Below are positions 6,112 through 62,368 of a DNA stretch of 64,000 bases, one piece after another. A model generated the notes under the pieces. That model had not been told where the DNA came from. It worked only from the letters and a program-made list of their open reading frames with translations, and searched no databases. Numbering within the stretch: position 1 is the stretch's first letter; each line of letters begins with the position of its first letter. The stretch is taken from positions 372,001-436,000 of the forward strand of contig NZ_JMCB01000003.1 of the NCBI RefSeq assembly GCF_000737315.1, given 5' to 3'. The position numbers were made by a program, and so were the translations under genes. The stretch comes from Hyalangium minutum. Lineage in GTDB: Bacteria > Myxococcota > Myxococcia > Myxococcales > Myxococcaceae.

Positions 6112-6140
6112 CTCCTGAAACTTCGTTGCGAATGGAAGGA

Positions 6141-6167
6141 GGAGCCCGCCCCCTGAGTCCGGGCTCC
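6141..6167. terminator. Intergenic stem-loop
   Basis: GGAGCCCG (6141-6148) / CGGGCTCC (6160-6167) perfect 8-bp stem between two co-oriented genes; no U-tract. Confidence 0.45.
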
Positions 6168-6180
6168 CCCAAGGACATCA

Positions 6181-7071: not shown

Positions 7072-7123
7072 GGTGAAGCCTCCGAGCAGTCCGGGTGAGT
7101 GGTCCGGTGATGCTCAGAGGCAT

Positions 7124-7139
7124 TGCAACGGAAGGGCCA
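7124..7139 (-). promoter_or_regulatory. Putative sigma54 (-24/-12) promoter
   Basis: Minus strand reads TGGCCCT-TCCG-TTGCA, matching TGGCACG-N4-TTGCW with the invariant GG and GC correctly spaced; about 50 bp upstream of the 7071 start. Confidence 0.65.
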
Positions 7140-7153
7140 ACGCCTGACGGCCC

Positions 7154-8548: not shown

Positions 8549-8613
8549 TCTAGGGGGCCGGCCGAGCCGCACCGTGAAAATGAGCGCGGGCGGCACACGA
8601 CACAGCCCCGCGC

Positions 8614-8639
8614 TGGCACAAGGCACAGCTCGCTGTGCC
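8614..8639. promoter_or_regulatory. Palindromic GGCACAGC-N2-GCTGTGCC element, copy 1
   Basis: TGGCACAAGGCACAGCTCGCTGTGCC upstream of the bEBP gene; near-identical copy at 11998-12023. Confidence 0.6.
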
Positions 8640-8700
8640 AGGGTCTGTGCCTGCGGGCACCGACGAAGTGTCCTGAGAGAACACTCGTGAATACATCTGT

Positions 8701-11700: not shown

Positions 11701-11967
11701 GAACTTGAGGGCCACGGTGCGGCCCAGGCGCTTGTCGCGAGCCTTGTAGACCTCGCCCATGCCGCCGCGCCCCAGCAGCTCGAGGAACTCGTAGCGCTCC
11801 CACCCGGAGACCGGGAACGCCGGGCCTGAGGTGACCCCGGCCTGAGGGGGAGGCGCGCTGGCCCCATCCGTCCCGGGCAGCGTGGCGAGGTTCTCTTGCT
11901 CGGCAGCGGGCGTCGCTCGAACGAGGGTTGGTTCGAGGGCCGGCGCTGCATCACCAGGATCCGGCAT
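8701..11967 (-). CDS. Ser/Thr protein kinase with hydrophobic segment and long TPR region
   Basis: GRGGMGEVY, VALK, HRDLKPTN, DFGLA, YMAPE and DVYSLG are all intact; one hydrophobic helix, then TPR repeats; 1088 aa. Confidence 0.93.
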   Translation of the reverse strand: MPDPGDAAPALEPTLVRATPAAEQENLATLPGTDGASAPPPQAGVTSGPAFPVSGWERYEFLELLGRGGMGEVYKARDKRLGRTVALKFILGSDPELVMRFLQEARAQARIDHPNICKVYEVGEVQGKAYIAMQLVEGQRLDRAASTLSQAEKVRILQEVATAIHEAHRQGVVHRDLKPTNIAVERTESGRWFPVVMDFGLAYDASHGHGLTLSGALLGTPAYMAPEQARGELSSIDRRSDVYSLGATLYELLVGTAPFTASTLAGTLDKVLNEEPPSLHSRMPQIDRDLEIIVLKCLSKEPHQRYVSARALSEDLARYLDGETILGRRPSLQYRLRRVSRKHRALVAVSGLSLAIILVLATFGVRAWLEARNTRQQSEERARLAEKLGQEVKEIEWFMRLASALPLHDTRREQELVRERMHRIAALLPGLGATGEALIHYALGRGHLALHELDKAHEELLLARKQGLDSPELHYALGRVLGELYHRALEHARRSGNQEWLAARQRELEEKYLQPALQSLERSQGVELESPRYLEGLIAFYRRQYDVALRAAAQASTEAPWMHEAWKLAGDVTRVRTVEQPGLSYETARAGLLEAASFYDNAISLGGSAPVNYEALAEVWLRQSELDEKQGKPQEQALERALAASEKSIQAAPQRSVGYTQKAYVLMRRYWVAVHQPKDQDVSALLMEWIATGRRAVELDPGDVSAYDALGIGYLKRGGYEARNGRDPVPSFREAIAQLSRALQLQPNHPWALNDLGAAYLAQGRYQGEHGQDPRESYQEALRRFEQAERADPTYLYPLANQTTAYYELAEYSVLRGFNPEADVQRALKAAEQGLALDAGYYWILNSAAGAELVLANHLLQTGRDPRPALEGARRHLERSLSINPAHARTHLYQAMGFSLEARHALRERLDPGTALSLGRQSIERALGHDAGCAECRIESARLGLLEVAWAQQKGSASADLLQRALSEAQRAVELFSSYYETHLVLARVHWLLAESSDPGVARASIVEGLKHVELALQIDPTLAQAYALRGALLLVQARKADQEAERRELLPQARAALARAVELNPLVRGEYEELLREAQESLVEEHP

Positions 11968-16400: not shown

Positions 16401-17452
16401 GTGCGCAGAGCGGTCGGCACGGAGAGGTGGCGCGGCTGGGCCAGCAGCTCTTGGACACGGCACCGGATGCCCACGCGGGTCCTCTCTATGTCGCGGCGGC
16501 GTGCTTCCTGGCCGCGATGAATACCTGGAGCGGCCAGAAGGCGGGGGCGGCCTCTGTGCTGGATCGCATCCAGGCCGTGTCCGCCGGCTTCGCGACGCCC
16601 AGCCGGGTGGCGCAGGCGTGGACGGAATCGGCGCAGGGCTACTTCGATCACTTCCTGTCGAACCGGCCCTGGCAGGCCCTGGTGCACTCGCGGGAGTCGG
16701 AGCGGACGTTCCGCGAGGTGGGCTCGGATCTCAACGAGACGGCGGCCCAGGCCCTCATGGGGCTGACGCTGGAGGCCATGGGTGAGGCGGGGTCCGGCAT
16801 TGAGGTGCTGCGCAAGGCGCTCGCGGTCTGCCAGCAAGGGGAGCACCGGTATGCCGCGGCGGGGTCTCGCATGCACCTGGTGCTGGTGCTGTCGGGCAGC
16901 GCCGAGCCTGGGCACCAGGAGGAGGCGGGGTCTCTCGCGCGCCAGATCCTGGAGACGGAGAAGCCCAACCTGCTGCACCAGGGCGTCGCGCACGTCGCGC
17001 TGTCGAAGGTGGCTCTGGCCCAGGGCGATCTGACGGTGGCGGAGGGCCAGGCTCGCCGGGCGTGCGATCTGCTGGCGGTGCTCATGCCCTTCCACCTGCT
17101 CGCGAGCCGGAGCCTGTGCATGACGTTGCTGGCACAGGGGCACGTCCAGGAGGCGCGGGCGGTGGCGGAGCGAGGCGTCCTTGTGCTGGAGAAGCTGGGG
17201 GGAGAGGGCTCTGGGGCCGTGGGGACATGGCTGTCGCTCGTGGAGGCGTGCTTGGCGCAGGGGGAGACGGCGGCGGCGGAGAAGGCCTTGCGCAAGGCGC
17301 AACAAAGCCTGGCGGTGCGCGCGAGGGACATCCCGGATCCGGTGGCCCTCGAGCGCTTCCTGAGCCAGGTGCCCGAGAACGCCCGCACGCGGGAATGGGT
17401 GCGTCAGCGCTGGGGCACGGATTGGGATGGTGCCCATGCCCGAGTTCCATGA
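13466..17452 (+). CDS. Ser/Thr kinase + degenerate cyclase-like region + AAA/P-loop ATPase + TPR-like C-terminus
   Basis: [22 protein letters not shown]; Walker A APAGTGKS; Walker B LVLEDLHW; GNALFLEEL; helical C-terminus; 1328 aa. Confidence 0.92.
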
Positions 17453-20036
17453 GCTGGCCCCCGGCACGCACATTGCCGATCGCTTCACGGTGGAGGCCCT
17501 CGCGGGGCAAGGGGGGATGGGGGCCGTCTACCGGGCCCAGGACACGCTGACAGGGCGGCGGGTGGCGCTCAAGCTGCTGCACGCTGTCACGTCTCCGGAG
17601 GCGGTGTACCGGTTCAACCGGGAGGCCATCCTGCTGGCGGAGCTGCGCCACCCGGCCATCGTGTCCTACGTGGCGCATGGCAGCACACGGCGGAGCCAGC
17701 CTTTCCTGGCCATGGCGTGGATCGACGGGGAAGATCTGGCGCAGCGCTTGAGGACGAAGCCTCTGAGGCTGCCGGAGAGCGTGGCCCTGCTTCGCCGCAG
17801 CGCCGAGGCGCTCGCGTTCGCGCACCAGCAGGGCATCATCCACCGGGACATCAAGCCGTCGAACCTGTTCCTGCGCGGAGGGCGGGCCGACGACGTGGTC
17901 GTCCTGGACTTTGGCTTGGCGCGCTATGCGATGCCCACGCTGGTGGGGGTGACACGGCGACAGGGAGCGATTGGTTCGCCGGGGTACATGGCGCCGGAGC
18001 AGGCCTCGAACCAGCCGGAGATCCTCCCAGGCGCGGACATCTTCTCGCTGGGGTGCGTGCTGTACGAGTGCCTCACGGGCGAGTCTCCGTTCGCGGCCCC
18101 CACCTTCGCGGCGGCGCTGGACAGGCTGTTGTTCGGCCACCCTGCCCCACTGGAGGCGCTGCGTCCGGGGCTGCCTCCGGGCCTGCAGGTGTTGGTGGAT
18201 CGCATGCTGGACAAGGATCCGCGGCGGCGGCTGCCGGACGCTGCCAGCCTGCTGACCGCGCTCTCGGCGCTCGAGTCGATCCCGGATCTGTTGTTGCCGG
18301 ACTCCCGGATCGGAGTCGCGCAGTCGAGGGCTGCCGATCCGGAGCCCCAGCTCATGAGCCTCGTGCGCGTGGCCTTTCCGGTGGGGACGGCCTCTCCGGG
18401 GGCGGAGTCTCCACAGGAGCGGGCCACGCGTGACGCGGTACGAGCGACGCTCTTGTCCCACGGAGCGCAGGTGGAGGCACTGCCCGACGGCTCGCTCTTG
18501 GGCGTGGTGGAACTGGAGCGGGGCACGGCTGCGGACCAGTCCGCACTGGCCGCGCGCAGCGCGCTGGCGCTCAAGGCGCGTTGGCCCGAACTGCGCGTGG
18601 TGGCCGCCACGGGCGTCGGTGTCTTCCAGGGAGCACTGCTGGCAGGGCCTGCGCCGGACCGGGCGGAGTGGCTCCTGAGCCACTTGGAGAAGAACCCCGC
18701 CGCAGCTTCCCCCGCTTTGCTGGACGATGTGACGGCGGGACTGCTGGACGCGGGCTTCGAGCTCTCGAAGGTGGCCCGGGGACTCATCCGGCTCCAGGGA
18801 GAGAGGAGGGAGCGGGGCGGGCCTCGCTCACTGCTAGGGCGCCCTACCCCCTTCGTGGGCCGAGATCAGGAGCGGGCCCTATTGGAGCTCACGCTTACGA
18901 CGTGTGCGGATGAGCCTACCGCACGGGCCATGCTGGTGACGGGCTCGGTGGGAGCTGGAAAGTCCCGGCTCGTGGAGGAGTTCCTCCGCCGGGTCGAGCA
19001 CCGCGAGCCGCCGGTGCAAGTGCTCTGGAGCCAGGGGGATCCGCTGGAGGTGGGGACCTCGTATGGCCTGGCGAGCCGGGCGCTGCGGCACGTCTGCGGC
19101 ATCTCGAAGGCAGACGATCTGGAGACAAGCCGGGCGCGGCTCGCTGAGCGCGTGGGGAAACACCTGCCCGCCGATCAGGCGCGAGACGTGGCGATGTTCC
19201 TGGGGGAGCTGTGTGCCCTCCCCTTCCCAGAGGAGGACCACGCGCAACTCCGAGCGGCACGAAGCGATCCGCGGCGGATGAGTGAACAGGTGAGCCGGGC
19301 GCTGGTGAGCTTCCTTCGGGCCGAGTGCGCACAGGGCACGGTGCTGTGGGTGCTAGAGGATCTCCACTGGAGCGATGCGGCCACAATCCGGCTGCTCGAC
19401 GAGGTGCTGCGCGAGCTGGCGGAGCAGCCGCTGATGGTGCTCGCGGCGGCGAGGCCCGAGGTGAAGGAACTCTTCCCGGCTCTCTGGTCTCGTTTCCTGC
19501 AGGAACTGCCGTTGCGAGGGCTGAGCCCCAAGGCGGGCACGCGGCTGGTGCAGGAACTGCTGGGCACCAAGGCCGCACCGGACGAGGTGGCGCTGTTGGT
19601 GGATCGCTCCATGGGGAACGCATTGTTCCTGGAGGAGATGATCCGAAGCACAGCCGAGGGCTCCAGCGATCAGACACCCGGTTCAGTGCTGGCGATCCTG
19701 CTGTCTTCGTTGCAGCGGTTGAGCCCGAACCTTCGGAAGGTGCTGCGAGCCGCCAGCCTCTTCGGTCCCACCTTCTGGGTGGGAGGGTTGAAGGCGCTGT
19801 TGGAGAACCAGCTCTCCGAGGAAGAGCTGACACAGAGCCTGCGGCAGTTGGTGGATCTCGAGGTGGTGCAGCTACAGCCCACCAGCCGCTTCTCCGGAGA
19901 AACCGAGTACCGCTTCCGGCAGTTGGCGGTGCGTGACGCGGCCTACAGCCTGGTGCCCGACAGCCTGAGGCCGACATGGCAACGGCAGGCCAGCGCATGG
20001 GTGGACGGAGCCGGGACTGGGACGCGAGCCCGGTAG
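17427..20036 (+). CDS. Paralogous Ser/Thr kinase-AAA protein, C-terminally truncated
   Basis: Same motifs ([30 protein letters not shown]). Colinear with the upstream paralogue up to RDAAYSLVP, then stops about 450 aa earlier. Start is 17427 or 17436. Confidence 0.8.
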   Translation: MVPMPEFHELAPGTHIADRFTVEALAGQGGMGAVYRAQDTLTGRRVALKLLHAVTSPEAVYRFNREAILLAELRHPAIVSYVAHGSTRRSQPFLAMAWIDGEDLAQRLRTKPLRLPESVALLRRSAEALAFAHQQGIIHRDIKPSNLFLRGGRADDVVVLDFGLARYAMPTLVGVTRRQGAIGSPGYMAPEQASNQPEILPGADIFSLGCVLYECLTGESPFAAPTFAAALDRLLFGHPAPLEALRPGLPPGLQVLVDRMLDKDPRRRLPDAASLLTALSALESIPDLLLPDSRIGVAQSRAADPEPQLMSLVRVAFPVGTASPGAESPQERATRDAVRATLLSHGAQVEALPDGSLLGVVELERGTAADQSALAARSALALKARWPELRVVAATGVGVFQGALLAGPAPDRAEWLLSHLEKNPAAASPALLDDVTAGLLDAGFELSKVARGLIRLQGERRERGGPRSLLGRPTPFVGRDQERALLELTLTTCADEPTARAMLVTGSVGAGKSRLVEEFLRRVEHREPPVQVLWSQGDPLEVGTSYGLASRALRHVCGISKADDLETSRARLAERVGKHLPADQARDVAMFLGELCALPFPEEDHAQLRAARSDPRRMSEQVSRALVSFLRAECAQGTVLWVLEDLHWSDAATIRLLDEVLRELAEQPLMVLAAARPEVKELFPALWSRFLQELPLRGLSPKAGTRLVQELLGTKAAPDEVALLVDRSMGNALFLEEMIRSTAEGSSDQTPGSVLAILLSSLQRLSPNLRKVLRAASLFGPTFWVGGLKALLENQLSEEELTQSLRQLVDLEVVQLQPTSRFSGETEYRFRQLAVRDAAYSLVPDSLRPTWQRQASAWVDGAGTGTRAR

Positions 20037-43995: not shown

Positions 43996-44172
43996 CTACA
44001 ACGCGAGCGGAGCTAGAAGCAGCGCACCTGAACCGCCCGTCGCGACCACGAAAGCAACACCCGCGACGACAACGACGGTCCCGATGGCCACCTCGGTCTT
44101 ATGCTCTCTGAGCCAAGTGAGCGCCCTTTCGATGTTTGAGAACTCAAGGCGCTTCTTATCCTTTTCAACTCC
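43996..44172 (-). pseudogene. C-terminal remnant of a small myxobacterial membrane/toxin-like protein
   Basis: Manual translation: GVEKDKKRLEFSNIERALTWLREHKTEVAIGTVVVVAGVAFVVATGGSGALLLAPLAL*. No ATG before an upstream in-frame TGA at 44278-44280. Confidence 0.55.
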
Positions 44173-44602
44173 GAGCTGTACGTCATCTCCCAGATCGTCG
44201 AGAGCACCACCTCCTCGACGGATTCCTCCTCCAGTTCGTGGTCCTCCAGCTCCTCGGACTCGTCCTGGTCCTCGTCCTCAGAGTCCTCCTGGCCCTCGTC
44301 GAGCTCCGACTCCAGCTCCAGCTCGTCCTCGGACAGCTCGGGAGGCGGCGGCTCCGACTGGTAGCGCTCCGGGCTCCGAGGCTCGAGTCGCTGCCTCCTT
44401 CCGAGCCGCGGCTGAGGGCGTCCGTATGGACTGGAGCTTTGAGGGCTGCACCCGCGCACGTGTCTCGACAGTGACGCACCTTGGGAGCCGCTGCGTTCGA
44501 CAGGCGGCGACACCCTCGGAGATCCCGAAAAACCCGGCCGGCTCAATCTCCACCGAAGAACCGGTCGGCAGGCGCATGCCCGGAAGCGGAAGGAGATGCG
44601 AC

Positions 44603-46912
44603 ATGGGGTACGGACGCGGCAGTCACGAGCCTACAGGTGACGCAAGTTCTCGGCGAAAGCGGATCTTTGCAGCTCTGGTGGCGCTGGCCTTGGGAGGCGC
44701 ATGTAACACGGCGGGCTCGGACGAGGATGCGCGAGCCCGGCGCGAGGGGAACCTGGGCGACGAGGTGTGCGAGGTTCCCCCCTACACGCCTCACTTCGAG
44801 CCCGCGCTGCAGTGGGCGTGGACGGGCAGCCCCGTCCTCCCCGAGTACAACCAGGTGATGATGACGCCGGCCGTCGCCGACGTGAACCAGGACGGCACGC
44901 CCGACATCATCTTCAGCTCCTTCCGGGACATCCCGAACGATGACTTCGACTGGCGCGAGGGCGTGCTGCGCGCCATCAGCGGCAACGACGGGCACGACCT
45001 GTGGACCGTCACGGATCCGGCCTACCGCATCAAGGCTGCGGCCAGCATCGCGGTGGGCGACATCGACAATGACGGCAAGGTGGAGATCTGCGGCATCCCG
45101 ACGGATGGCCGCGGCATCATCTGCTACGAGAACGACGGCACCTTCAAGTTCCGCACGGCACCGGACGCGTTCGATTACAACGAGTGGGGCGGGCCTTCGC
45201 TGGCGGACCTCGACGGTGATGGCACCGTGGAGATCCTCGACGGCAATCGGGTGTACAGCAACACGGGCGCGCTGAAGTGGGTGGGCTCGGATGGCATGGG
45301 CGGCGCGCAGTACACCGGCCCGGTATCCTTCGCGGCAGACATCGATGGGGATGGCATCCAGGAACTTGTCAACGGCCGCGCCATTTACCGGGCCGATGGC
45401 ACCCTCAAGTGCGCCAACACGAACATCCCGCAGGGGCTCGCGGCGGTGGGCAACTTCGACGGTGACACGAAGGGCGAGATCGTCATCTCGGGCTACGGCA
45501 AGGTGAGCCTGTTGGATGATGACTGCTCGTTGGAGTGGAGCGTGAACATCCCGGGCGGCTGCGTGAACGGCTGCGGCGGCGCACCGACGCTGGCGGATGT
45601 GGACAACGATGGCCTGCCGGAGATCGGCGTGGCGGGCGAGAACTCCTTCACCGTCTTCGAGACGGACGGCAGCGTGAAGTGGACGAGCCCCATTCAGGAC
45701 TGGAGCTCGGGCAAGGCGGGCGCGACGGCGTTCGACTTCGAGGACGACGGCCACATCGAGTTCGTCTTCGCGGACGAGGTGTCGCTGCGCATCTACAACG
45801 GTGCCACCGGTGCCATCCGCTGGCAGACGCGGCACAGTTCGGGGACGACGCACGAGAACCCGGTCATCGCGGACGTGGATGGCGACCTGGCCGCGGAGCT
45901 GGTGGTGGCCACCAACGACCTGGCGTATCCGCCGTACCACGGCATCCGCGTGTACCACGACACGCAGGAGGGCTGGGCGCGCACGCGGCCGATCTGGAAC
46001 CAGCACGCCTACTCGGTCACGAACGTCAACGACAACGGCACCATCCCGGCGCATCCGGGGAAGCACTGGCAGTTGCCGAAGCTCAACACCTTCCGCGCCA
46101 ACGTGGCGGGCTACCTGAACGAGTGCCTGCCGCCGCCTCCTCCTCCTCCCCCGCCCCCGCCCCCGCCTCCTCCTCCCCCGCCGCCTGAGAACGAGCAGCC
46201 CGTGGCTGTTTGCAAGAACGTCACTGTCATCGCGGATGCGCAGTGCCAGGGCAGCGCCAGCGTGGACAACGGCAGCCATGATCCGGACCACCAGCCTGGG
46301 CCGTTCACCGTCTCCGAGTCGCCCACCGGTCCGTTCGGCCGGGGTACGCACAACGTGACGCTGACGGCCACCGATGGGGAGGACACGGCGCAGTGCGTGG
46401 GCCAGGTCACTGTGGTGGATGAGACGGATCCTGCGGTGAGCTGCCCTGCTCCGATCACGGTCCAGACCTGCTCGCCGGCGGGGAAGCAAGTCTCCTTCGC
46501 GGCGTCGGCTACGGACAACTGCGGCCCGGCGCAGGTCACCTGCACGCGCGCGTCTGGGTCTACCTTCCCGGTGGGCCAGACGGCGGTGAGCTGCGCGGCG
46601 GTGGACGGTTCGGAGAACAGCGCCTCGTGTGGCTTCTCCGTGACGGTCGAGGGCGACGAGACGCCGCCCTCCATCACCTGCCCCATCGCGGTCAACGCGT
46701 CGATCAGCCTGGGACAGATCTCCGCGCTCGTGCAGTTCACGGTGTCGGCCAATGACACCTGTGGCCCGGCGCAGGTCACCTGCAGCCATCCGCCCGGCTC
46801 GCTCTTCATCCCGGGGCTGACGCCCGTGACGTGCACGGCTCGGGATGCCTCGGGCAACACGGCCTCATGCAACTTCGGGATCTACGTGAGCCTGGACCTC
46901 TCCCTGCCGTAG
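44603..46912 (+). CDS. Lipoprotein: FG-GAP/VCBS propeller + poly-Pro linker + HYR domains
   Basis: AGGAG RBS before ATG 44603; lipobox LGGAC; repeats homologous to 32137-34761; C-terminal HYR-like units (CPAPITV...ATDNCG...FPVGQTAVSC). Confidence 0.85.
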   Translation: MGYGRGSHEPTGDASSRRKRIFAALVALALGGACNTAGSDEDARARREGNLGDEVCEVPPYTPHFEPALQWAWTGSPVLPEYNQVMMTPAVADVNQDGTPDIIFSSFRDIPNDDFDWREGVLRAISGNDGHDLWTVTDPAYRIKAAASIAVGDIDNDGKVEICGIPTDGRGIICYENDGTFKFRTAPDAFDYNEWGGPSLADLDGDGTVEILDGNRVYSNTGALKWVGSDGMGGAQYTGPVSFAADIDGDGIQELVNGRAIYRADGTLKCANTNIPQGLAAVGNFDGDTKGEIVISGYGKVSLLDDDCSLEWSVNIPGGCVNGCGGAPTLADVDNDGLPEIGVAGENSFTVFETDGSVKWTSPIQDWSSGKAGATAFDFEDDGHIEFVFADEVSLRIYNGATGAIRWQTRHSSGTTHENPVIADVDGDLAAELVVATNDLAYPPYHGIRVYHDTQEGWARTRPIWNQHAYSVTNVNDNGTIPAHPGKHWQLPKLNTFRANVAGYLNECLPPPPPPPPPPPPPPPPPPPENEQPVAVCKNVTVIADAQCQGSASVDNGSHDPDHQPGPFTVSESPTGPFGRGTHNVTLTATDGEDTAQCVGQVTVVDETDPAVSCPAPITVQTCSPAGKQVSFAASATDNCGPAQVTCTRASGSTFPVGQTAVSCAAVDGSENSASCGFSVTVEGDETPPSITCPIAVNASISLGQISALVQFTVSANDTCGPAQVTCSHPPGSLFIPGLTPVTCTARDASGNTASCNFGIYVSLDLSLP
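46130..46186 (+). repeat. Poly-proline tract (19 codons)
   Basis: Uninterrupted CCN codons between ECL and ENEQ. Confidence 0.85.
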
Positions 46913-49063: not shown

Positions 49064-50866
49064 ATGCGTCTCATCTCCCGCCTTGGGGCGGTCGTGCTGT
49101 GCCTCCTGCTTCTCCCCCTGCTCTCCGCCCGTGCGGAGGGCTCAGAGCCCAAGCGCGTCGTCGCCGTCCTCTACTTCGACAACAACACCGGGGACTCCTC
49201 GCTCAACGTCCTGCAGAAGGGCTTCGCGGACATGATGGTGACGGACCTGTCCGCCGTCGAGCAGCTCCAGCTCGTCGAGCGCGAGAAGCTCCAGGCGATC
49301 ATCGATGAGCAGAAGCTCCAGCGCAGCAAGTACTTCGATGCAAAGACCGCGGTGAAGCTCGGCAAGCTCGTTGGCGCCCAGTACGCCGTGTCCGGCTCCT
49401 TTCAAGCCATGGAGCCGCAGCTGCGCATCGATATCAAGATGTTCGATCTCCAGACCGGCAATGTCCTCGTCACCGGCCAGGTCGTCGGCCTCAAGAACAA
49501 GCTCTTTGAACTCCAGCAGCAGCTGGTGACCCGCTTCGTCACCGGCCTCGCGCTCAAGCTCCCCGGCCCTCCCCGCCTCAAGAGCCGTACCCCCGACGTC
49601 GATACCCTGCTGAGCTACTCCAAGGGCATCGATCTCGTGGACCAGGGCAAGCTCGAAGAAGCCCGCGTGCAGCTCGCCGCCGTGGTTAGCAAGGCTCCCA
49701 CCTTCCTGCTCGCGCGCGAGCGCCATGAGCAGCTCCTCGCCCGGCTGAAGGCCTCGGAGGCGAAGCGGGGGGAGGTGCTCTCCGACGTCAGCGAAGCGCT
49801 CGGACGAAGCGCCGAGGAGTTCCTCCGCTCCACCCCGGCTGAGGGCCTCGATGAAAAAGGCTCCCTCATGCGCCTGGGCTACCGATCGGTCCGGTTGCAG
49901 TACCTGCTGCGCCAGCTCAAGCCGCACCTGGGCACTGAGCACCCGAATGTCATCCTGCCCGGCCACGAGGCCCAGGTCCTCGCCCTGCTGCGGCTCTGGC
50001 ACGAGCAAGGCATCGCCTACGTCCAGGAGAACCGCGAGCACTTCCGCCGCTTCCACAAGGTCATCGAGGGGGCCCCCTACCTCTCGTCCATGAGCCTGAC
50101 GCTCCAACCCGAGGACGAGGAGCGCCTGCGCCAGGCAAAGTATGGCTCCCTCGCCTACGAGGACGACGCGCCCGTCTCCGTGGCGGAGTTTCTCCTCATG
50201 GGCCGGTACCGGACCAGCTCCGAGTCCTTCCAGATGGCTCCCACGCTCGCGGACCAGGATCCCTCCGTTCTCAAGGAGGGCTTTCAGTTGCTGGACGAGG
50301 CCCTCCAGGAGGCCGAGGCCACCATTCCGCGGTTGCAGGAAGCCCGCGCCCGTCAGGTTCTGGAGCTGTATGGAGACGCCCTCATGCTTCGAGGCCATGT
50401 GGAAGAGGCGGTCGCCAAGTGGCAGCTGTTCCTCGATCGCTTCCCGTCCGCGAGGGCCTTCCCGTGGATCAGCAACAAGATCAAGACAGCGCTGGGCGTG
50501 GGCCCCAACCTCCGCGAGAACGCGGGCACGCAATACAACGTGGCCCTGGCTTCGTGCGACATGCCCGCCGCCCGCGAGGGCTACCACCACGAGCTGAACC
50601 GGCGCCTGCAGACCCAGGGCTACAAGGCCGCTCGCGCCATGTTCGAAGAGCTGGACGCGAAGTGCAGTGGCGCGAAGGACGCCAAGTTCGTCATCCGTGG
50701 CGTCCTCGTCTCGACCGCCTTGTCTGCCGGGCGCGCGGGAGACTGCGCCACCTTTCACTCGCTCTCCCCGCGCTTCTTGGAGCTGGGCGGCAGCAAGGGC
50801 GATCTCGCGGGGTACCTGAAGAACTACGTGCCCCACTGCCTCCCTGCCCCGGCCACGAGCCCCTGA
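49064..50866 (+). CDS. Exported CsgG/FlgO-like (TolB_N-like) domain protein with TPR-like extension
   Basis: Signal peptide; VAVLYFDN...KGFADMMVTDLS...LVEREKLQAIIDEQKL...KLGKLVGAQYAVSGS...LRID...TG; helical C-terminal region with Cys pairs. Confidence 0.75.
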   Translation: MRLISRLGAVVLCLLLLPLLSARAEGSEPKRVVAVLYFDNNTGDSSLNVLQKGFADMMVTDLSAVEQLQLVEREKLQAIIDEQKLQRSKYFDAKTAVKLGKLVGAQYAVSGSFQAMEPQLRIDIKMFDLQTGNVLVTGQVVGLKNKLFELQQQLVTRFVTGLALKLPGPPRLKSRTPDVDTLLSYSKGIDLVDQGKLEEARVQLAAVVSKAPTFLLARERHEQLLARLKASEAKRGEVLSDVSEALGRSAEEFLRSTPAEGLDEKGSLMRLGYRSVRLQYLLRQLKPHLGTEHPNVILPGHEAQVLALLRLWHEQGIAYVQENREHFRRFHKVIEGAPYLSSMSLTLQPEDEERLRQAKYGSLAYEDDAPVSVAEFLLMGRYRTSSESFQMAPTLADQDPSVLKEGFQLLDEALQEAEATIPRLQEARARQVLELYGDALMLRGHVEEAVAKWQLFLDRFPSARAFPWISNKIKTALGVGPNLRENAGTQYNVALASCDMPAAREGYHHELNRRLQTQGYKAARAMFEELDAKCSGAKDAKFVIRGVLVSTALSAGRAGDCATFHSLSPRFLELGGSKGDLAGYLKNYVPHCLPAPATSP

Positions 50867-50870: not shown

Positions 50871-53177
50871 TCAGCGCCGGCGCCAGCTGAGCAGCCGCGC
50901 CGCCGCCACCGTGCCGAACACGAGCACCGTGAAGGCCGCCGTGTACCCGAGGAAGACGATCCACCCCGTTGTCGTCCCCGGGATGCCCACCGAGGGGCTG
51001 AGATCCTGGAACTGCGCTCCCGAGAAGAAGCCACACGCCAGGCTCACCGGCAGGAAGACGAACACCAGCAAGCCCACCATCCGGTCGAACTGGTCCCGCT
51101 TGTACTGGTCCAGCTCCGAGGCCTGATCCCTCATCGCCGCCACGGTCTCCTGCATGCCGTGGAGCGAGTGCCACGCCAGGTAGCGCGCGTTGAGATCCGG
51201 ATCCTCGCCGATACGTGAGTGCCACAGCGAGTTGGTGAACAGCATCACGTCCGAGCGCACGCTGCGCGCCGGCCGCAGGCTCTGCCAACGCGAGGTGCGG
51301 TAGCGCTGCTCCACCTCGGCCATCCTCCGGCTGATCTCGAAGGCCGAGTAGCGCTGTCCGGTGGTGAGCAGGAACAGGAGGAAGTCCTGATCGCACCGCA
51401 GCGGCGCGCCCTCCTCCGCCTCGAGCAGAATCTCCACCCGGGCCCCTCCCGTGGGGGTGAGCCAGTGCTCCGTCTCTCCAGCCGCGTCCTTCAGCACCCG
51501 GCGGCTCTCCGCCGCGGCCTCCGAGGGCAGCCGCTCCAGCGTGGGCGCCGTCCCCGAGGCCAGCGCGTGAAAGAGTCCCTGCATGGAGCGCGAGTCATCC
51601 AGCATGGACGAGCGGCCTCGGGAGATCCGGTAGGCGCCGTAGACGAGCCACCGCTCCGGGCCCAGCGGCTCGAGCGAGGGCCTCAGCTCCTTCAGGGGTG
51701 TCAGCTCCCAGAGTGCCCGCCCCTCGGCGAGCGCCGCCTGTTCCTGGGCGAGCGCGTACAGCGAGATCTCCTCCTTCCGAGGCTGCTCGATCCACACCAC
51801 GACGAGCTGGTTCGGGTAGACGGAGACGTGCACGGTCTGCCCTTCGGAGGGCTGCTCGTAGTGCGCCACATCCGCCTCCGAGGAGCTCCCGAGGAAGGAC
51901 TGGGTGACGGCCGGGTGGAAGGTTCCCGCCTGCTCCGAGAAGTCACGGCGGCGGAAGCCTCGTGCCAGGAGTTCGGTGTGCGGCATTCCGCCCTTCCACA
52001 GGAAGGGCCGGGCAAAGACGGTGTGGGCCCGGAGGATGGGGACGTTGCGGCCCACGTTGTACCGACTCCAGAGCGCCTCCCACAGCGATCGGCGTGTCAG
52101 GCGTGTGCCCGCATACGGTGGGGCTACCAGCGTGGCTCGGCTCGTGGAGCTCGTGTAGCCATCCGTGTACCAGGGATCGGAGTAGTCGTTGGGCTGGTGC
52201 TCGAAGCGCTTGGGCCCTCGCGCCCGAGGGCCACCCTTCGGCAGCTGATCTCCCTCCAGCGTGTCCAGCCACTCGGCGAGGCCTGCCAGAGTGCCTGCGC
52301 GCTCGGGGGCCAGCGAGAGGGTGTGCCGGTAATAGGCCGTCTCCACGTGGGGGGCGTGGACGGCCATGAAGTCGAAGCCCTGCCCATAGTGTGTGTACTC
52401 CGTGTCGGAGCGGGCCAGGAGCTTGAGGACGGTGACGTCCTGGAACGACGAGAGGAAGAGTGCATCCACCCGGCGCACCGGGGCGTCCTTGGCCTCGGCC
52501 AGGGGGATGTCCAGCTGCACCCGCTGCGCGCGCGACAGCTCCGCCTTGTACAGCAGGCCGTCCGCCTTCAGGCGCCGGGTGACCGGCGGAGGCACGAGGG
52601 ACTCCGGGAGCCTCGTCAGCTCGGAGCGATCACGCACCACCGCCATCGCGGCGGCCAGCAGCTCGAGCACCGGACGGGCCGGCCGGCCCAGCTGCGAGGG
52701 CCAGAGGCGCAGCGCCGCGTAGAACACCGGCCCCAACGCCCGTTCGTACTCTCCGGCCAGCTCGGTCTGGCCCTGCTCCCACGCGCTGATGTACTCGCTG
52801 AAGGCCTCGGCGCCCTCGGGGAACTGGCCGTGGAGGATCCGGTAGATGGCGAGCAGCGCCGCCGTGGTCGCATCGAGGGTCGCCTCGTGGATGCGCAGCC
52901 GGATGGGCCCGGAGGAGCCCTCGGCGGCGAAGGCATCCAGCTCCGCTCCGGCCATCAGCACCGCGCCCGTGGACGCGTGCATCCCGCGACGCACCCACTG
53001 CGGCAGCTTCCACGACAGCATGCGCGGATGGGCAGGCAAGGACTCGCTTCGGGCGCCCACGCTGATGAACAGCTCTCTCGGGCCGGGCTCGGCCCCGGGG
53101 GCGGGTTTCTCGGTGCTCCACTCGACCTGATCTTCTCGGGACAGCAGCTCAACGCTCTGCCGGAACCTGGCATCCAT
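50871..53177 (-). CDS. Fusion of degenerate DHH/NrN-like domain and CorA-like two-TM domain
   Basis: 768 aa from ATG 53177. N-terminal IHEATLDATTAALL and YSDPWYTDG...VAPPYAGTRLT segments; C-terminal helical region (GQRYSAFEIS...FTNSLWHSRI...MRDQASELDQY) followed by two TMs with LPVSLACGFFSG. Confidence 0.6.
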   Translation of the reverse strand: MDARFRQSVELLSREDQVEWSTEKPAPGAEPGPRELFISVGARSESLPAHPRMLSWKLPQWVRRGMHASTGAVLMAGAELDAFAAEGSSGPIRLRIHEATLDATTAALLAIYRILHGQFPEGAEAFSEYISAWEQGQTELAGEYERALGPVFYAALRLWPSQLGRPARPVLELLAAAMAVVRDRSELTRLPESLVPPPVTRRLKADGLLYKAELSRAQRVQLDIPLAEAKDAPVRRVDALFLSSFQDVTVLKLLARSDTEYTHYGQGFDFMAVHAPHVETAYYRHTLSLAPERAGTLAGLAEWLDTLEGDQLPKGGPRARGPKRFEHQPNDYSDPWYTDGYTSSTSRATLVAPPYAGTRLTRRSLWEALWSRYNVGRNVPILRAHTVFARPFLWKGGMPHTELLARGFRRRDFSEQAGTFHPAVTQSFLGSSSEADVAHYEQPSEGQTVHVSVYPNQLVVVWIEQPRKEEISLYALAQEQAALAEGRALWELTPLKELRPSLEPLGPERWLVYGAYRISRGRSSMLDDSRSMQGLFHALASGTAPTLERLPSEAAAESRRVLKDAAGETEHWLTPTGGARVEILLEAEEGAPLRCDQDFLLFLLTTGQRYSAFEISRRMAEVEQRYRTSRWQSLRPARSVRSDVMLFTNSLWHSRIGEDPDLNARYLAWHSLHGMQETVAAMRDQASELDQYKRDQFDRMVGLLVFVFLPVSLACGFFSGAQFQDLSPSVGIPGTTTGWIVFLGYTAAFTVLVFGTVAAARLLSWRRR

Positions 53178-53220
53178 CGGGTTGCAGCATACAGGTGCCT
53201 CCGTGCCAGAATCCTGATTC

Positions 53221-53952
53221 GTGCGTTCCTTTTCTTCGCTTCCGGTGCGTTTTCTGTGTCTGTTCCTCGGGCTGCTGGCACTGCCCGCCCCCGCCGCCGA
53301 GCAGCCCACCGTCGCGGTCCTCTACTTCGGCTACGGCGGGAAGACGCCGGAGCTGGAGGTGCTCCGCAAGGGGCTGGCCCAGATGCTGATCTCGGATCTG
53401 TCGGGCTTCGGGACGGTGAAGCTGGTGGAGCGGGAGCGGCTCCAGGAGATTCTGGACGAGCTGGAGCTGGGCCAGTCCTCCAAGTTCGATGCGGACACCG
53501 TGGCCAAGCTCGGCAAGCTGCTGGGCGCCCAGTATTTGGTGATGGGCGACTACTTCGATCTGCTGAACAGCCTCCGCGTGGATGCCCGAGTCATCGAGGT
53601 GAAGACGGGCCAGATTCTCCGCTCTCTGGGAGCCCGGGGCAGCGCGGAAGACTTCTTCACGCTCGAACAGAAGCTGTCGCAGGACATCAACAAGGTGCTC
53701 GAGGAGCTCGTCGCCAAGGCCACCGCTCCGTCCAAGGAGCCCGCTCCCGGGCCCTCTGGCGGTTCCCATGGGTCCACGCCCTCTCGCATGGCGCGGCGGC
53801 TCACCACGAAGACGGCGCTGCGCTATTCCAAAGCCCTGGACGCGAAGGATCGCAAGGACGTGGAGACCGCGAAGAAGGAGCTGAAGGCGGTGCTCGAGGA
53901 GCAGCCGGACTTCGTGCTCGCCTCCGCGGATCTGGCCCGCCTGATGAAGTGA
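53221..53952 (+). CDS. Exported CsgG/FlgO-like domain protein (short paralogue)
   Basis: GTG start, signal peptide, VAVLYFGY...KGLAQMLISDLS...LVERERLQEILDELEL...KLGKLLGAQYLVMG...LRVDARVIEVKTG. Confidence 0.78.
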   Translation: MRSFSSLPVRFLCLFLGLLALPAPAAEQPTVAVLYFGYGGKTPELEVLRKGLAQMLISDLSGFGTVKLVERERLQEILDELELGQSSKFDADTVAKLGKLLGAQYLVMGDYFDLLNSLRVDARVIEVKTGQILRSLGARGSAEDFFTLEQKLSQDINKVLEELVAKATAPSKEPAPGPSGGSHGSTPSRMARRLTTKTALRYSKALDAKDRKDVETAKKELKAVLEEQPDFVLASADLARLMK

Positions 53953-53959: not shown

Positions 53960-55228
53960 CTACTTGCAGAAGAACTCGGCCTGACGGGATCCCTTCTGCC
54001 GGGCGCGGCACCACGCGGCCTTGGCGCGATCCCGATCCGCCACGGTCTCCTCCTGCTTTCCAGCGGACTGGGAGGCCTGAGCCCTCGCGGCGTAGGCATG
54101 CCCCAGGAAGAGGGAGACCTCCGGGATCTCCGGGGCCAGCTCCGTCGCGCGCTCCAGGAACTGCACGGCCTCCTCCACGCGCTGCTTCTGCAGGGCGAGG
54201 AGCCCCAGGTTGAAGCGCGGCTTCCAGAACCGGGCGTCCAGCTCCGCGGCCCGCTGGTAGTGCTCCGCGCTCTCCAGCCAGTCATTGGCGAGCGCCGCCA
54301 TCCTCCCGGCGAGGTTCTCGGCCGCCGCGAAGTCCTTGCACTCGAGCGCCGCGCTCATGGCCGCGGCATCCGGGTGGCCCGTCAGGAAGCTCGCCTTGGC
54401 CACGAAGAAGGAACCCTCCGGGCCCCAGCGCTGGCTCTGGGCACGAAGCGTCTCGAGGGCTGCGTTGGCCTCCTGGGGACGTGACGCCTCGGGGAGCTGA
54501 TCCGAGAGCTTGGGCACCACGGCCACCAGGGCCTCGACCGCGGAGGCATCCTTTTCCTTGCAGGCGGCCGGGACTGGAGGCTCGCCGCTCTCCGTCACGA
54601 GCACGTCCAGCTGCTTCCGGAGCTGAGCGGCTCTCTCGGAGGCATGGAGCGAGAAGAGCCCCAGCGCCACGACGAGGATCGCGAGGAGCGCTCCACCCAC
54701 GAGCGCCAGCCGCCGGTTGTTGGCAGGGCTGGCCTTCGGGGGAGCCGCCGTGGAAGCCACCGGCTCGGAGGGGGCGGCGGGCACGGGGCTCTCGGGCTCC
54801 TGGGCGTAGCGCTCCTTATACCAGGACAGGATCGCGACCAGGGAGTTGAGGGCCGTGAGCGCATCCTCGAGGCCCACCTTCACACCGGCCTCGTGGAGGC
54901 CGCCCGCGTGATCGTGCGAGCTGAGGTTCCCCCAGGCCTGCACCGTGCCCATGTGCGCCAGGATGTTGGTGGGAATGACGCTGGCGTGGGCCTGCTGCCG
55001 GAACTTGGAGAGCAGCTCGTCCAGCATCGCCTTGCCCGGCGTGTGCTTGAGCTCGGTGGTGGCCAGCGAGCGGAGGATCATCTCCACCACCAGCCGCGCG
55101 TTCTGCAGCGCCCCCTTGTAGTCCTGGTGCCGGGCCCGGGTGGTGAGCGCCGTGAGATCGTCGCGGGCCCTCCCGAAGTACGGCGTGAGCTGCTCGATGC
55201 GCTTGAGCAGTGGCTCCAGCTCGGTCAT
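53960..55228 (-). CDS. DUF4145 (HEPN-like) domain + TM + TPR protein
   Basis: N-terminal ARLVVEMIL...LDELL...IPTNI...WGNLSSH...ALNSLVAILSWY; single TM LALVGGALLAILVVALGLFSL; C-terminal TPRs (HYQRAAELD...RFNLGLL...FLERATELAP). Confidence 0.7.
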   Translation of the reverse strand: MTELEPLLKRIEQLTPYFGRARDDLTALTTRARHQDYKGALQNARLVVEMILRSLATTELKHTPGKAMLDELLSKFRQQAHASVIPTNILAHMGTVQAWGNLSSHDHAGGLHEAGVKVGLEDALTALNSLVAILSWYKERYAQEPESPVPAAPSEPVASTAAPPKASPANNRRLALVGGALLAILVVALGLFSLHASERAAQLRKQLDVLVTESGEPPVPAACKEKDASAVEALVAVVPKLSDQLPEASRPQEANAALETLRAQSQRWGPEGSFFVAKASFLTGHPDAAAMSAALECKDFAAAENLAGRMAALANDWLESAEHYQRAAELDARFWKPRFNLGLLALQKQRVEEAVQFLERATELAPEIPEVSLFLGHAYAARAQASQSAGKQEETVADRDRAKAAWCRARQKGSRQAEFFCK

Positions 55229-58383: not shown

Positions 58384-58971
58384 ATGATCTCTCGCACGGA
58401 ACGCGTCGCCCCCCGTCTCCCGCTGGCCTCTACCCCTGAGGTGAGCACCCCGAACCGGCCCACGGTGGCCGAGGCTCCCAAGCCCTTCGCGCGTGACACG
58501 TTCGAGGGCGCATCCGCGGTGCAGCGCACGGCGCAGGTGGCCGCGGCGCCCGCCGGGGATCACGGCAAGCTGATGAGCGAGTACCTCACGGGCGCGCGTC
58601 CTCCTCCGGCGGACTTCAAGCAGGTGATGGGCTACGAGCCCTACCAGATCCAGACGAAGCACGGGCCTCGGATGCAGGATCCGTTCGGTGATGCCTCGGC
58701 GCCTGGGAAGATCGGCCCGGACAAGGAGTTCGACCCGGCGGCCAAGACGCACGACTACGGGTACGATCTGCTCCGGTACTACGCGAAGAAGGGCACGCCG
58801 CTGGCGCCCGAGGCGCGCAAGGCCGCCGATGCGCAGTTCCGCAAGGACCTGTTCGACTACGCCAACGATCAGAAGGGCTTCGGGGACAAGTGGAAGTTCA
58901 AGACGTGGGCACAGATCTACGCCACGGCGGTGGAGCTGAACTCGCTCCGCCAGGGCTACGGGCCTCCGTGA
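58384..58971 (+). CDS. Prokaryotic phospholipase A2-like protein
   Basis: FDPAAKTHDYGYDLL...RKAADAQFRKDL resembles the prokaryotic PLA2 His-Asp motif (xCxxHDxGY...D..F..D). Confidence 0.6.
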   Translation: MISRTERVAPRLPLASTPEVSTPNRPTVAEAPKPFARDTFEGASAVQRTAQVAAAPAGDHGKLMSEYLTGARPPPADFKQVMGYEPYQIQTKHGPRMQDPFGDASAPGKIGPDKEFDPAAKTHDYGYDLLRYYAKKGTPLAPEARKAADAQFRKDLFDYANDQKGFGDKWKFKTWAQIYATAVELNSLRQGYGPP

Positions 58972-60952: not shown

Positions 60953-62368
60953 ATGCGGTCCCTTCTTCTCACCCTCCTCCTGCCGGGCGTCGCAGCCGCG
61001 GGCGAGTTCCATCGCCTCTACGCGGAGGAGGCCTCGGCCAGCAGCTTCCTCAAGAGCAACTGGAACAAGTACGAGGAGAACTACCACCCGAGCTACGTGC
61101 TCGATGACGATCCGAAGACGGCCTGGGTCGAGGGTGCCGAGGGCGACGGGATCGGCGAGTCGCTGACGATCCCCGTGTCGGATCTCCGCTCGGCGCGAGC
61201 CATTCGCCTGGTCATCTTCAATGGCTACCAGAAGTCTTCCAACCTCCTGAGCGCCAACGCCGCCGCCAAGCAGCTCACCGTCACCGTGGCGGGGCCCGGC
61301 GGCCAGCCGTCCGCGAAGAAGCAGCTCACCCTGGAGCGGAAGATGGGGCCTCAGTCCTTCGACATCCCCGTCACGGCGGGTGTTGCCGAGGTGGTGCTCA
61401 CCCTCGACAGTGTCCACCCCGGCTCGAAGTACCGCGACACCTGCATCTCCGATGTGCAGGTGTTCGTGGACAGCGACGTGCCCTACAACCCCACCGTCGA
61501 GAAGGGCAAGCGGGAGCGCATGCTCCAGTGGAAGAAGGGCCGCGTGGCCACGGCGAAGTACTTCGCCTCCCTTCCGAAGACTTACCCCTACGCCTCCACG
61601 CAGTTCGAGCGGAAGTGGGAGAACGAGTTCCTCTCGAGTCGCTTCTCCAAGGTCGAGGACAAGGACGACGACGGAGAGTACGAAACGAAGGTGCTCTCGG
61701 AGGAATACGTTCCGCTCCTGAAGCAGGTCCAGCAAGGGAAGATCCAGGGGCCCCTGTCCGCGGAGGAGCAGGCGCTGTTGAAGGAGCTCGAGGCGCTCTC
61801 GCGAGCGGGTCCCCCCAAGACTGGGAAGTGGTACTCGGTGGTCAAGCAGAAGCCCACCGTCCAGCCCGAGGGCCTTTATTTCTCCCGGTTGCTCGAGCCC
61901 CTGCTCCACCCGGCGGACATGACGCTCTTCGAAGCCCAGGGACAGGGCTCACTCACGCCGGAACCGGTCCCGGGCATGGAGTACGCCTCGGGCTCCGAGG
62001 AGGAGGTCCTCTCCAACTTGCTGCTGCTCGAGGGCTCGGCCACGGACCCGAAGAAGGTGTTCTTCACCTACAAGCAGATCGTCAGCGAGCGCACCACGAG
62101 CACCACCACCCTGCAAGGCGTGGCCCTCATTTCGGAGGGGAAGCTCCAGCGGCTGGTGACCTTTGAAACGTCCCAGCATGAGATCGGTGAGGGCACGAGC
62201 GAGGAAGTGGCCGTCAGTGTGCTGGTCCCTACTTACACCGGGGGCAAGGTGTCGAAGCTGGTGACCACCCGCCTCGAGGATGCCGAGCCCGTGTATGACA
62301 TCTCGGAGGACACCCCCGGCGTCGAGCTGAAGGTGACGACACTGGTGCCTCCCCTCTCCGGTTCATGA
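60953..62368 (+). CDS. Exported protein with N-terminal discoidin/NADase-type glycan-binding-like domain
   Basis: Signal peptide; ASASSFL...YHPSYVLDDDPKTAWVEG..GDGIGESL...IFNGYQKS...DTCISDV. Confidence 0.7.
   Translation: MRSLLLTLLLPGVAAAGEFHRLYAEEASASSFLKSNWNKYEENYHPSYVLDDDPKTAWVEGAEGDGIGESLTIPVSDLRSARAIRLVIFNGYQKSSNLLSANAAAKQLTVTVAGPGGQPSAKKQLTLERKMGPQSFDIPVTAGVAEVVLTLDSVHPGSKYRDTCISDVQVFVDSDVPYNPTVEKGKRERMLQWKKGRVATAKYFASLPKTYPYASTQFERKWENEFLSSRFSKVEDKDDDGEYETKVLSEEYVPLLKQVQQGKIQGPLSAEEQALLKELEALSRAGPPKTGKWYSVVKQKPTVQPEGLYFSRLLEPLLHPADMTLFEAQGQGSLTPEPVPGMEYASGSEEEVLSNLLLLEGSATDPKKVFFTYKQIVSERTTSTTTLQGVALISEGKLQRLVTFETSQHEIGEGTSEEVAVSVLVPTYTGGKVSKLVTTRLEDAEPVYDISEDTPGVELKVTTLVPPLSGS

Follow-up and report, generated by a model that had tools for sequence, protein, structure and literature searches.

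CorA-type effectors belong to the most poorly understood outputs of signalling by type III CRISPR systems, and both their opening by a ligand and their need for a degrading enzyme are unexplained (PMC10600005, PMC12255297). In the type III-B system of Bacteroides fragilis, CorA is accompanied by the NrN protein and is activated by S-adenosylmethionine-AMP (SAM-AMP), and in Aliarcobacter butzleri nrn and corA are fused; the closest structural matches of the CRISPR NrN are PggH and GdpP, and its activity (D85/H86/H87) is needed for immunity (Chi et al. 2023, PMC10600005). CRISPR-linked CorA is reported from type III loci only, with an active degrading enzyme (PMC10600005, PMC11229360). In this work we have analysed a 768-residue protein encoded within 64,000 nucleotides of Hyalangium minutum DNA (contig NZ_JMCB01000003.1, positions 372,001 to 436,000; hereafter the window), in which an original prediction had seen a DHH/NrN-like domain fused to a CorA-like tail, with no CRISPR in view.

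Our results make it highly probable that this protein joins a discrete N-terminal module, an alpha/beta middle domain and a CorA-type stalk with two transmembrane (TM) helices that lacks the GMN motif, and that it does so outside CRISPR. CorA-type effectors fused to DHH enzymes are known from type III CRISPR; what is new here is a non-CRISPR, catalytically remodelled and lineage-fixed variant with new partners. As in the CRISPR CorA/NrN pairs, a large soluble N-terminal part is followed by a stalk with two TM helices that is a distant relative of CorA, and as in the nrn-corA fusion a DHH-type domain is physically linked to the channel; unlike them, the protein is encoded outside CRISPR-cas, appears to be vertically inherited and has other conserved neighbours. 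By analogy with these systems we propose, with a probability of about 0.5, that it may be a ligand-gated membrane channel or effector, in which a dead phosphodiesterase domain would bind a phosphorylated small molecule.

Architecture of the protein and its CorA-type tail

The open reading frame opens at an ATG and the protein begins MDARFRQ. An in-frame GTG at position 53309, upstream of this ATG, would yield 812 residues (44 more); because the MDA... N-terminus is common to all homologues, 768 residues is the correct length. The G+C content at third codon positions (GC3) is 0.89, and the codon-position composition fits a real gene, in a window of about 68% G+C whose nearest database relatives are Hyalangium, Archangium, Cystobacter and Vitiosangium. 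The 114 homologues found in a large protein database (46–98% identity) are nearly all full-length and the rest are fragments of the same protein, so this is no chance reading frame. In an alignment of 41 sequences of its clade the mean column identity is 65%, with long invariant runs all along the protein, and judged from this alignment the gene is under strong constraint.

The full-length AlphaFold 2 (AF2) model has a predicted local distance difference test score (pLDDT) of 82.6 and a predicted template modelling score (pTM) of 0.76. Hydropathy over the entire protein gives two hydrophobic stretches only, at residues 697–723 and 736–765, both C-terminal and the second followed by WRRR, from which the large N-terminal part and the C-terminus are deduced to be cytoplasmic, with a short loop between the TM segments exposed to the periplasm; the original prediction of a large soluble N-terminus with two terminal TM segments was thus borne out. 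Pfam and NCBIfam gave no useful match on the target (no Pfam match even at E ≤ 1), and neither phmmer nor the clade profile found anything useful for it among the PDB sequences. The matches of the target to PDB sequences of a de novo TIM barrel and of MetAP2 were set aside as chance, and those of Pfam DUF4271 to 11 of the 41 clade members (E ≥ 6.7e-4) are regarded as TM-segment noise.

The C-terminal tail has the topology of CorA: a long stalk helix, then two C-terminal TM helices, with both termini cytoplasmic. Helices are predicted in the model at residues 597–628, 638–651, 660–673, 675–720 and 737–767, and the helical segment quoted in the original prediction lies in the first four. The CRISPR-derived "CorA-like" model PDLC01043 of PADLOC matches residues 601–723 only (E = 3.7e-4). 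Two PADLOC CRISPR-CorA models match 26 and 22 of 47 members of the superfamily, with a best E of 2.9e-28, and their alignments lie mostly on the tail (profile positions ~275–450). Pfam CorA (PF01544) matches nine of the 41 clade members (best E 7e-6), and the one CorA score seen, that of P0125, is below the gathering threshold (16.6 vs 27 bits). The best PDB fold matches of the full-length model are Thermotoga maritima CorA and CmaX (E 4e-3 to 1e-2, probability 0.9–0.96). At the sequence level, a profile built from remote relatives aligns with T. maritima CorA (E = 2.4e-4) across the stalk helix, TM1 and TM2.

It is at the periplasmic end of TM1 that the protein departs from CorA. The profile alignment sets ...FFPlvlvaGFFSG-tF opposite ...FMPLTFIAGIYGMNF, that is, FFP..GFFSG against FMP..GIYGMN, and with the superfamily profile LPVSLACGFFSGAQ of the target aligns with MPLTFIAGIYGMN of T. 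maritima CorA, which is where the original prediction had placed it. GMN is replaced by SGAQ in the target, which leaves the aligned position without Asn, and the clade motif FLP(V/I)(S/T)(L/I)ACGFFSGAQF is invariant or nearly so; on these alignments, the motif for Mg2+ selectivity is lost in the target's clade. The distant relative P0210 retains GFFGMN, in keeping with a CorA-like ancestry. The periplasmic loop is also conserved, with G731, P733, T736, G738 and W739 invariant in the clade. In sum of likeness, the target shares with CorA of T. maritima (PDB entries 2iub, 4i0u and those beginning 8tm) and with CmaX (7nh9) the stalk helix, the two C-terminal TM helices, the cytoplasmic termini, (F/M)-P-L in TM1 and the presence of some conserved motif where TM1 meets the periplasm; it differs from them by SGAQ in place of GMN, by scores below Pfam CorA and by some 375 additional N-terminal residues.

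The resemblance of the C-terminus to CorA and CmaX in fold and sequence, and a UniRef entry that calls one homologue "CorA-like Mg2+ transporter protein", would suit an ordinary divalent-cation transporter of the MIT superfamily (CorA/ZntB/CmaX) with an added regulatory N-terminal domain. Members of this superfamily such as ZntB, moreover, tolerate variation at the M of GMN. We nevertheless consider a transporter quite unlikely, as the substitution of SGAQ for GMN removes the Asn and is invariant in the clade, the target has no Pfam CorA match at E ≤ 1, its tail scores higher against the CRISPR-effector CorA models than against transporter CorA, and in sister proteins TIR or HD effectors take the place of the tail.

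Residues 380–595 form an alpha/beta domain in the model and are, tentatively, a possible counterpart of the CorA cytoplasmic domain. Equivalence with the alpha-beta-alpha domain of CorA is suggested by alignment length alone, since the CorA fold matches of the full-length model span 300–400 columns; the PADLOC CorA model extends into this region in P0129 and P0166 only.

The N-terminal module and its relationship to DHH phosphodiesterases

An exhaustive profile search recovered 420 cluster representatives at E ≤ 1e-3, mostly of 650–900 residues and aligned to target residues ~30–440. As the fold search with the full-length model was diluted by the multi-domain query, residues 1–380 were remodelled alone, with an alignment deepened with remote relatives, and this AF2 model reached a pLDDT of 95.2 and a pTM of 0.91. 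Its seven best PDB matches are, at weak scores (E ≥ 0.018), all two-domain DHH/DHHA1 phosphodiesterases, with ~290 columns aligned, and include NrnA (4ls9), PggH (7d62) and GdpP (5xsp, 5xt3 and 5xsi), with which the module appears to share a two-lobed alpha/beta fold. In a viral structure library the best match of the same model had E = 3.3e-4, and the named matches were "exopolyphosphatase", "DHH superfamily phosphohydrolase" and "DHD superfamily phosphohydrolase". Pfam DHH is the commonest family in the remote relatives (8 of 41, best E = 8.4e-6) and the sole family that consistently matches isolated modules, always on the H.PDxD segment; the scores seen in relatives and isolated modules are 15–26 bits against a cut-off of 28.1, and cover motif I only. 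No solved DHH protein matched the module at the sequence level, either with phmmer or with profiles run against PDB sequences. From these matches we assign the module to the DHH superfamily, with a confidence that is moderate to good.

The module is, however, a separate family and not demonstrably NrN. It has no Pfam or NCBIfam model, and PADLOC reaches the tail only. Like NrN, it has PggH and GdpP among its best PDB matches, and like the DHH/DHHA1 enzymes its relatives retain H.PDxD, DHH and a motif of the GRGH type, and Pfam DHH matches them below its threshold; unlike NrN, the target's domain lacks DHH and DxD and comes from a family in which the motif order is reversed, the segment with motifs II/III preceding motif I. 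Swapping the two segments in five intact relatives lengthened the Pfam DHH match in three of them (to model position 98 of 125) and did not raise the score. Of the DHH/NrN-like N-terminus that had been proposed, the DHH likeness is supported and the NrN identity is not.

Coordinated replacement of the catalytic motifs

The key columns of the module were tabulated over 162 representatives, 156 of them outside the target's clade. Among these 156, 63 retain the D of DVG, DHH and DxD, and 64 have Lys at the last DHH position together with a non-Asp residue at the first DxD position; the remainder are mixed (21) or partial (8). Position 134 is Asp (NDQG) in 61 of the 63 intact representatives and Glu (WExG) in 61 of the 64 remodelled ones.

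The target is of the remodelled type. Residues S55-W56-K57 occupy the column of DHH and S39-V-G that of DVG, which in the clade reads S/G-V-G; K57 and G41 are invariant in the clade and W56 is conserved in at least 90% of it. The column of DxD reads T100-L-D102, with T100 and D102 invariant in the clade and D102 invariant across the superfamily; this is the IHEATLD segment, which in remote relatives is matched by positions 1–41 of the Pfam DHH model, that is, by motif I. W133 and E134 are likewise invariant in the clade. In the most conserved motif of the superfamily (DPWY...APP.AGTRL), P335, W336 and P354 are invariant over 81 superfamily sequences; intact relatives read PWYDGRGH..TI.D.P..GS.L where the target has PWYTDGY, so that DGY replaces GRGH, a sequence that seems to resemble the GGGH motif of DHHA1. 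None of motifs I–IV of DHH/DHHA1 proteins (DxD, D, DHH, D), nor GGGH, is kept in the alignment columns of the target. These observations agree with what had been read by eye from the sequence: that both quoted N-terminal segments are DHH-like, that DxD is reduced and no DHH triad is left. They also agree with the suggestion that the domain is catalytically dead, all catalytic signatures being replaced in the clade.

In DHH enzymes such as NrnA, GdpP and RecJ, the Asp and His residues of the motifs coordinate two metals. With most metal-binding positions lost, catalysis of the DHH type is strongly disfavoured, and conservation of the substituted residues suggests that the pocket was re-purposed and did not decay. 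The same conservation could be taken to mean a new active site: K57, E134 and D102 are invariant and the pattern recurs in 64 representatives, as it might if the module had kept enzymatic activity through a changed chemistry, free of metals or dependent on Lys, and its hydrolysis of a substrate were coupled to channel gating. We regard this as very unlikely, because in the alignment the motif II Asp, the positions of D55 and H57 of DHH and the first Asp of DxD are all lost, and to our knowledge there is no precedent for a metal-free DHH hydrolase.

Distribution of the clade and absence of a CRISPR link

A scan of species-representative genomes found the gene at 70 loci, all in Archangiaceae/Myxococcaceae, with no genome carrying two full-length copies. 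Plasmids gave no match for the target or for P0129, and viral contigs contained no member of the target's clade. Its members seem to have been passed on vertically, in synteny with genes for envelope proteins, which is not how a mobile defence island looks.

The prediction that no CRISPR was in view extends well beyond this locus. The 64-kb window contains no CRISPR array, cas gene or Rfam RNA, no CRISPR-like array lies within 10 kb on either side of the gene in any of the 70 clade loci, and no Cas family was found in the three loci annotated with Pfam. No separate candidate gene for SAM-AMP degradation is conserved near the target, and the DHH-like domain fused to it is without catalytic signatures. 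The sole cyclase found in the window is a response-regulator-GGDEF diguanylate cyclase (1573–2778, + strand), 48 kb from the target; the other genes are typical of myxobacteria (kinases, response regulators, adhesins, histidyl-tRNA synthetase). A search seeded with clade C, a Bacillota clade, for the CRISPR-linked NrN-CorA fusion returned Bacillota proteins and many non-CorA fusions, and no identifiable Aliarcobacter protein.

The homology of the tail to CRISPR-associated CorA nonetheless invites the idea that the protein serves as ancillary effector to some type III CRISPR system, or to another signalling system, located elsewhere in the genome and activating it in trans through SAM-AMP or cyclic oligoadenylate. 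Genome coverage for this host is the 64-kb window, and in one non-myxobacterial locus (L006) a stand-alone intact module does lie beside an array with reverse transcriptase-Cas1 (RT-Cas1) and Cas2. The lack of arrays and Cas families at the loci surveyed, the fixed and syntenic position of the gene across genera, and the fact that reported CRISPR CorA proteins occur only in type III loci with an active degrading enzyme, which here is dead, make this explanation highly improbable.

Conserved neighbours

Genes for two secreted CsgG/LpoB-like proteins and for a DUF4145-TM-TPR protein surround the target (Table 1). Their synteny was scored by a position-aware count over the 49 loci whose flanks both reach 4.5 kb or more, which avoids cross-matches between the two CsgG-like queries. 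In 31 loci the small CsgG-like gene, divergent, and the DUF4145-TM-TPR gene lie upstream and the large CsgG-like gene is convergent downstream; seven more have the upstream pair alone, which is thus present in 38 of 49 and never split. The 11 loci with none of the three in position include those of A. gephyra and C. fuscus, and in one of them (L041) the pair is merely displaced by ~2.4 kb; the target is intact in all. The orientation of the DUF4145-TM-TPR gene flips among loci, the remaining neighbours in the window are not conserved among the clade loci, and the remote clades (E, F and C among them) lack these partners.

The 43 bp that separate the start codons of the target and of the small, divergent CsgG-like gene show 76% mean identity over ten aligned species, with the core GGATTCTGGCACGG...CCT(G/A)TA(T/A)G, and contain no sigma-70 or terminator consensus. 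A sigma-54 reading of their TGGCAC was rejected, the -12 GC being correctly spaced in the Archangium subgroup only and lacking at that spacing in the window. At the locus of a 53%-identical relative (L001; 4603–5907, 14659–16488, 16485–18286), the CsgG-like/TPR block is larger and also includes two genes for caspase-like proteins (Peptidase_C14), one for a trypsin-like protease and a further CsgG-like gene, and there, as at L003, a 149-residue cyclic nucleotide (cNMP)-binding protein is encoded upstream.

Such neighbours could mean that the protein is no channel at all, and serves as a scaffold or signal-transducing subunit of an envelope complex with the CsgG/LpoB-like and DUF4145-TM-TPR proteins, the pseudo-enzyme being an interaction platform. 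The frequency of the upstream pair and of the full set, the strongly conserved divergent intergenic region and the five invariant positions of the periplasmic loop all speak for a role of this kind. We judge it unlikely, since the target remains intact in the 11 loci without the neighbours, these lie on opposite strands and one of them flips, the related clades E, F and C do without them, and the strong constraint on the pocket-forming columns of the N-module exceeds what a scaffold needs.

Table 1. Features of the gene and of its conserved surroundings, in positions of the window
Feature	Position	Strand	Evidence or remarks
Whole gene; 768-aa inner-membrane protein	50871..53177	-	Stop codon included; open reading frame list, 114 homologues, AF2 model
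DHH/DHHA1-like module, catalytically remodelled, residues 1-375	52053..53177	-	AF2 model, fold matches, module hidden Markov model (HMM)
Residues 35-57, ELFISVG...RMLSWK	53007..53075	-	Columns are DVG...(I/L)DHH in motif-intact relatives
Residues 92-102, IRLRIHEATLD, equivalent of DHH motif I	52872..52904	-	H.PDxD in relatives
Residues 133-136, WEQG	52770..52781	-	NDQG in intact relatives; D-to-E switch tracks DHH loss
Residues 329-360, PNDYSDPWYTDGY...APPYAGTRL	52098..52193	-	Most conserved motif of the superfamily
Middle domain, residues 380-595, alpha/beta	51393..52040	-	Secondary structure of the model; tentative
CorA-type helices, stalk and two TM helices, residues 597-768	50874..51389	-	PADLOC, Pfam, profile and fold matches
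TM1, residues 695-723, ending in FLPVSLACGFFSGAQF where CorA has ...YGMNF	51009..51095	-	HMM alignment, hydropathy
Periplasmic loop, TM2 and basic C-terminus, residues 724-768	50874..51008	-	
N1, secreted 600-aa CsgG/LpoB-like and TPR protein	49064..50866	+	Convergent with the target, 4-bp gap; Pfam
Divergent region between target and small CsgG-like gene	53178..53220	.	43 bp, highly conserved
N2, secreted 243-aa CsgG/LpoB-like protein	53221..53952	+	Divergent from the target; Pfam CsgG, E 3e-16
N3, 422-aa protein with DUF4145 (HEPN-like), TM and TPR	53960..55228	-	Pfam

Proposed function

We propose that, by analogy with CorA and with the CRISPR-associated CorA effector, the protein would form a pore of several subunits, probably five. 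A phosphate-bearing small molecule (a nucleotide or a derivative) may be bound, with no cleavage, by the pseudo-phosphodiesterase, either by itself or together with the middle domain, and, as in other sensor-effector fusions, the ligand in the remodelled pocket would control the opening of the pore, with ion flux or membrane depolarisation, not Mg2+ uptake, as the outcome. Conserved periplasmic neighbours and a fixed chromosomal, non-CRISPR gene point to an envelope-associated stress, signalling or cell-fate pathway, probably, and not to a mobile defence cassette, and the label of immune effector is less secure than the architecture.

Several of our results weigh against a ligand-gated channel. 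The DHH fold matches in the PDB are weak (E 0.018–0.4, TM-score ≤ 0.41), the target has no match to Pfam DHH (PF01368) or DHHA1 (PF02272) even at E ≤ 1, and in its family DVG...DHH comes before H.PDxD, the reverse of the canonical order I-II-III-IV. On the side of the tail, the CorA fold matches are weak as well (E ≥ 4e-3) and the target does not reach the gathering threshold of Pfam CorA. No ligand synthase or cyclase is encoded beside the gene, and the conserved neighbours, being absent from 11 of the 49 loci, are not obligatory partners. Finally, abortive-infection effectors are not usually inherited vertically as a single copy in a preserved gene order, and such inheritance equally fits a structural or housekeeping role. 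On the other hand, the findings that would have spoken most directly against the original prediction, namely an N-terminus without DHH fold, a C-terminus without CorA fold, or homologues with an intact transport motif in metabolic contexts, were not encountered.

Should the dead domain prove to sense a ligand, it would add to the cases of pseudo-enzymes recruited as receptors, and would point to an unidentified small-molecule signal of myxobacteria. The family also offers a series of natural experiments both on the opening of CorA by a ligand and on its need for a degrading enzyme, with a covalently attached phosphodiesterase-like domain, roughly equal numbers of intact and remodelled forms, and a clade free of CRISPR. 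Should it turn out to be no more than a scaffold or a transporter that has diverged, the interest of the protein would be local.

The module in other proteins and contexts

A profile of the Bacillota clade (clade C) was used to recover proteins that carry the N-module in other architectures, and in each fusion type positions ~10–356 of the module HMM, in target numbering, match as a single unit. This module of ~350 residues is N-terminal to a TIR domain in 17 proteins and C-terminal to a Ser/Thr kinase in ~32; further partners are HD-CE, TCAD9, an adenylate/guanylate cyclase domain, TIR-NACHT, NAD kinase and ABC units (the fusion proteins are P0316-P0336, P0322-P0363, P0308-P0309, P0366-P0374, P0369 and P0352). 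Of the 56 enzyme fusions, 48 have an intact module and none a remodelled one, and the two HD-CE fusions carry variants of the DHH triad. The 62 remodelled sequences of the fusion set are all among the proteins for which no partner domain is annotated, a group that includes the membrane-tailed clades E, F and G. We infer that the N-module behaves as a sensor or processor unit, mobile among architectures and found alongside immune-type effectors.

The contexts of the remote clades are varied. Clade A, intact and membrane-tailed, lies in operons with ~1300-residue AAA_16/TPR and NACHT (STAND-type) NTPases in three of three loci. One of these three, the L006 locus (4212–5602, 5880–11182), has the CRISPR array with RT-Cas1 and Cas2 and, directly after it, a 1374-residue AAA_16-TPR protein and the stand-alone motif-intact module (393 residues), whose start overlaps the end of the preceding gene. 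Remodelled clade E is found in an island of restriction-modification, toxin-antitoxin and insertion sequence (IS) genes, giant kinase-WD40 genes adjoin a TIR fusion, and other clades lie near sugar-transport genes or OmpA/MlaD genes. No cas10 was present in any of the remote-clade contexts sampled, and two further contigs were too short to inform on context. At the loci L004 (10001–21599) and L005 (6090–18307), intact DHH-like/CorA-like proteins stand in apparent operons with several AAA_16/NACHT/TPR NTPases of 850–1500 residues, which suggests an undescribed STAND-associated system.

In type III CRISPR signalling, CARF-domain effectors with intrinsic ring-nuclease activity are self-limiting fusions of sensor and effector. 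The N-module is like them, by analogy and not by homology, in being a constant ligand-handling domain with swappable effectors (membrane tail, TIR, HD, kinase) and in having active and inactive versions; it is unlike them in that its fold is unrelated. Two comparative-genomics papers on such conflict systems mention neither DHH nor the CorA protein, and the module family appears to be undescribed and unnamed in the literature searched. A wider interpretation, which we put forward as a doubtful possibility, is that the module is a widespread signal-handling domain of prokaryotic conflict systems, with a role like that of CARF or SAVED: the intact form, fused to TIR, kinase, HD, cyclase, NACHT or CorA-type membrane effectors and often beside STAND NTPases, would bind and hydrolyse a nucleotide-derived messenger, the remodelled form would be non-hydrolysing and membrane-tailed, and in the Archangiaceae clade an effector of the immune type would have been domesticated, as part of a fixed pathway linked to the envelope in these social, multicellular bacteria. 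The association of the intact module with TIR, HD-CE, kinase, TCAD9, cyclase and NACHT partners and with nearby STAND NTPases suggests a sizeable uncatalogued set of conflict systems that present annotation overlooks.

Other features of the window

Two adjacent giant Ser/Thr kinase and AAA_16 (STAND-like) proteins are encoded at 13466–17452 and 17427–20036 (+ strand), and a kinase-TPR protein at 8701–11967 (- strand). The kinase/AAA_16 proteins are of the partner class seen beside intact DHH-like/CorA-like proteins in other phyla, and here lie ~31 kb from the target.

A protein with an NADase_transloc domain (NAD-glycohydrolase translocation; 60953–62368, +) and a nearby 195-residue protein with a weak match to prokaryotic phospholipase A2 (58384–58971, +) may be secreted and toxin-like. 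The window also encodes a member of the cytosolic 5'-nucleotidase family PF05761 (41688–43580, +; E 5e-153), a family better known in eukaryotes, and a large FG-GAP/HYR surface protein (44084–46912, +) with a poly-proline tract of ~20 residues that corresponds to a tandem DNA repeat at 46129–46186.

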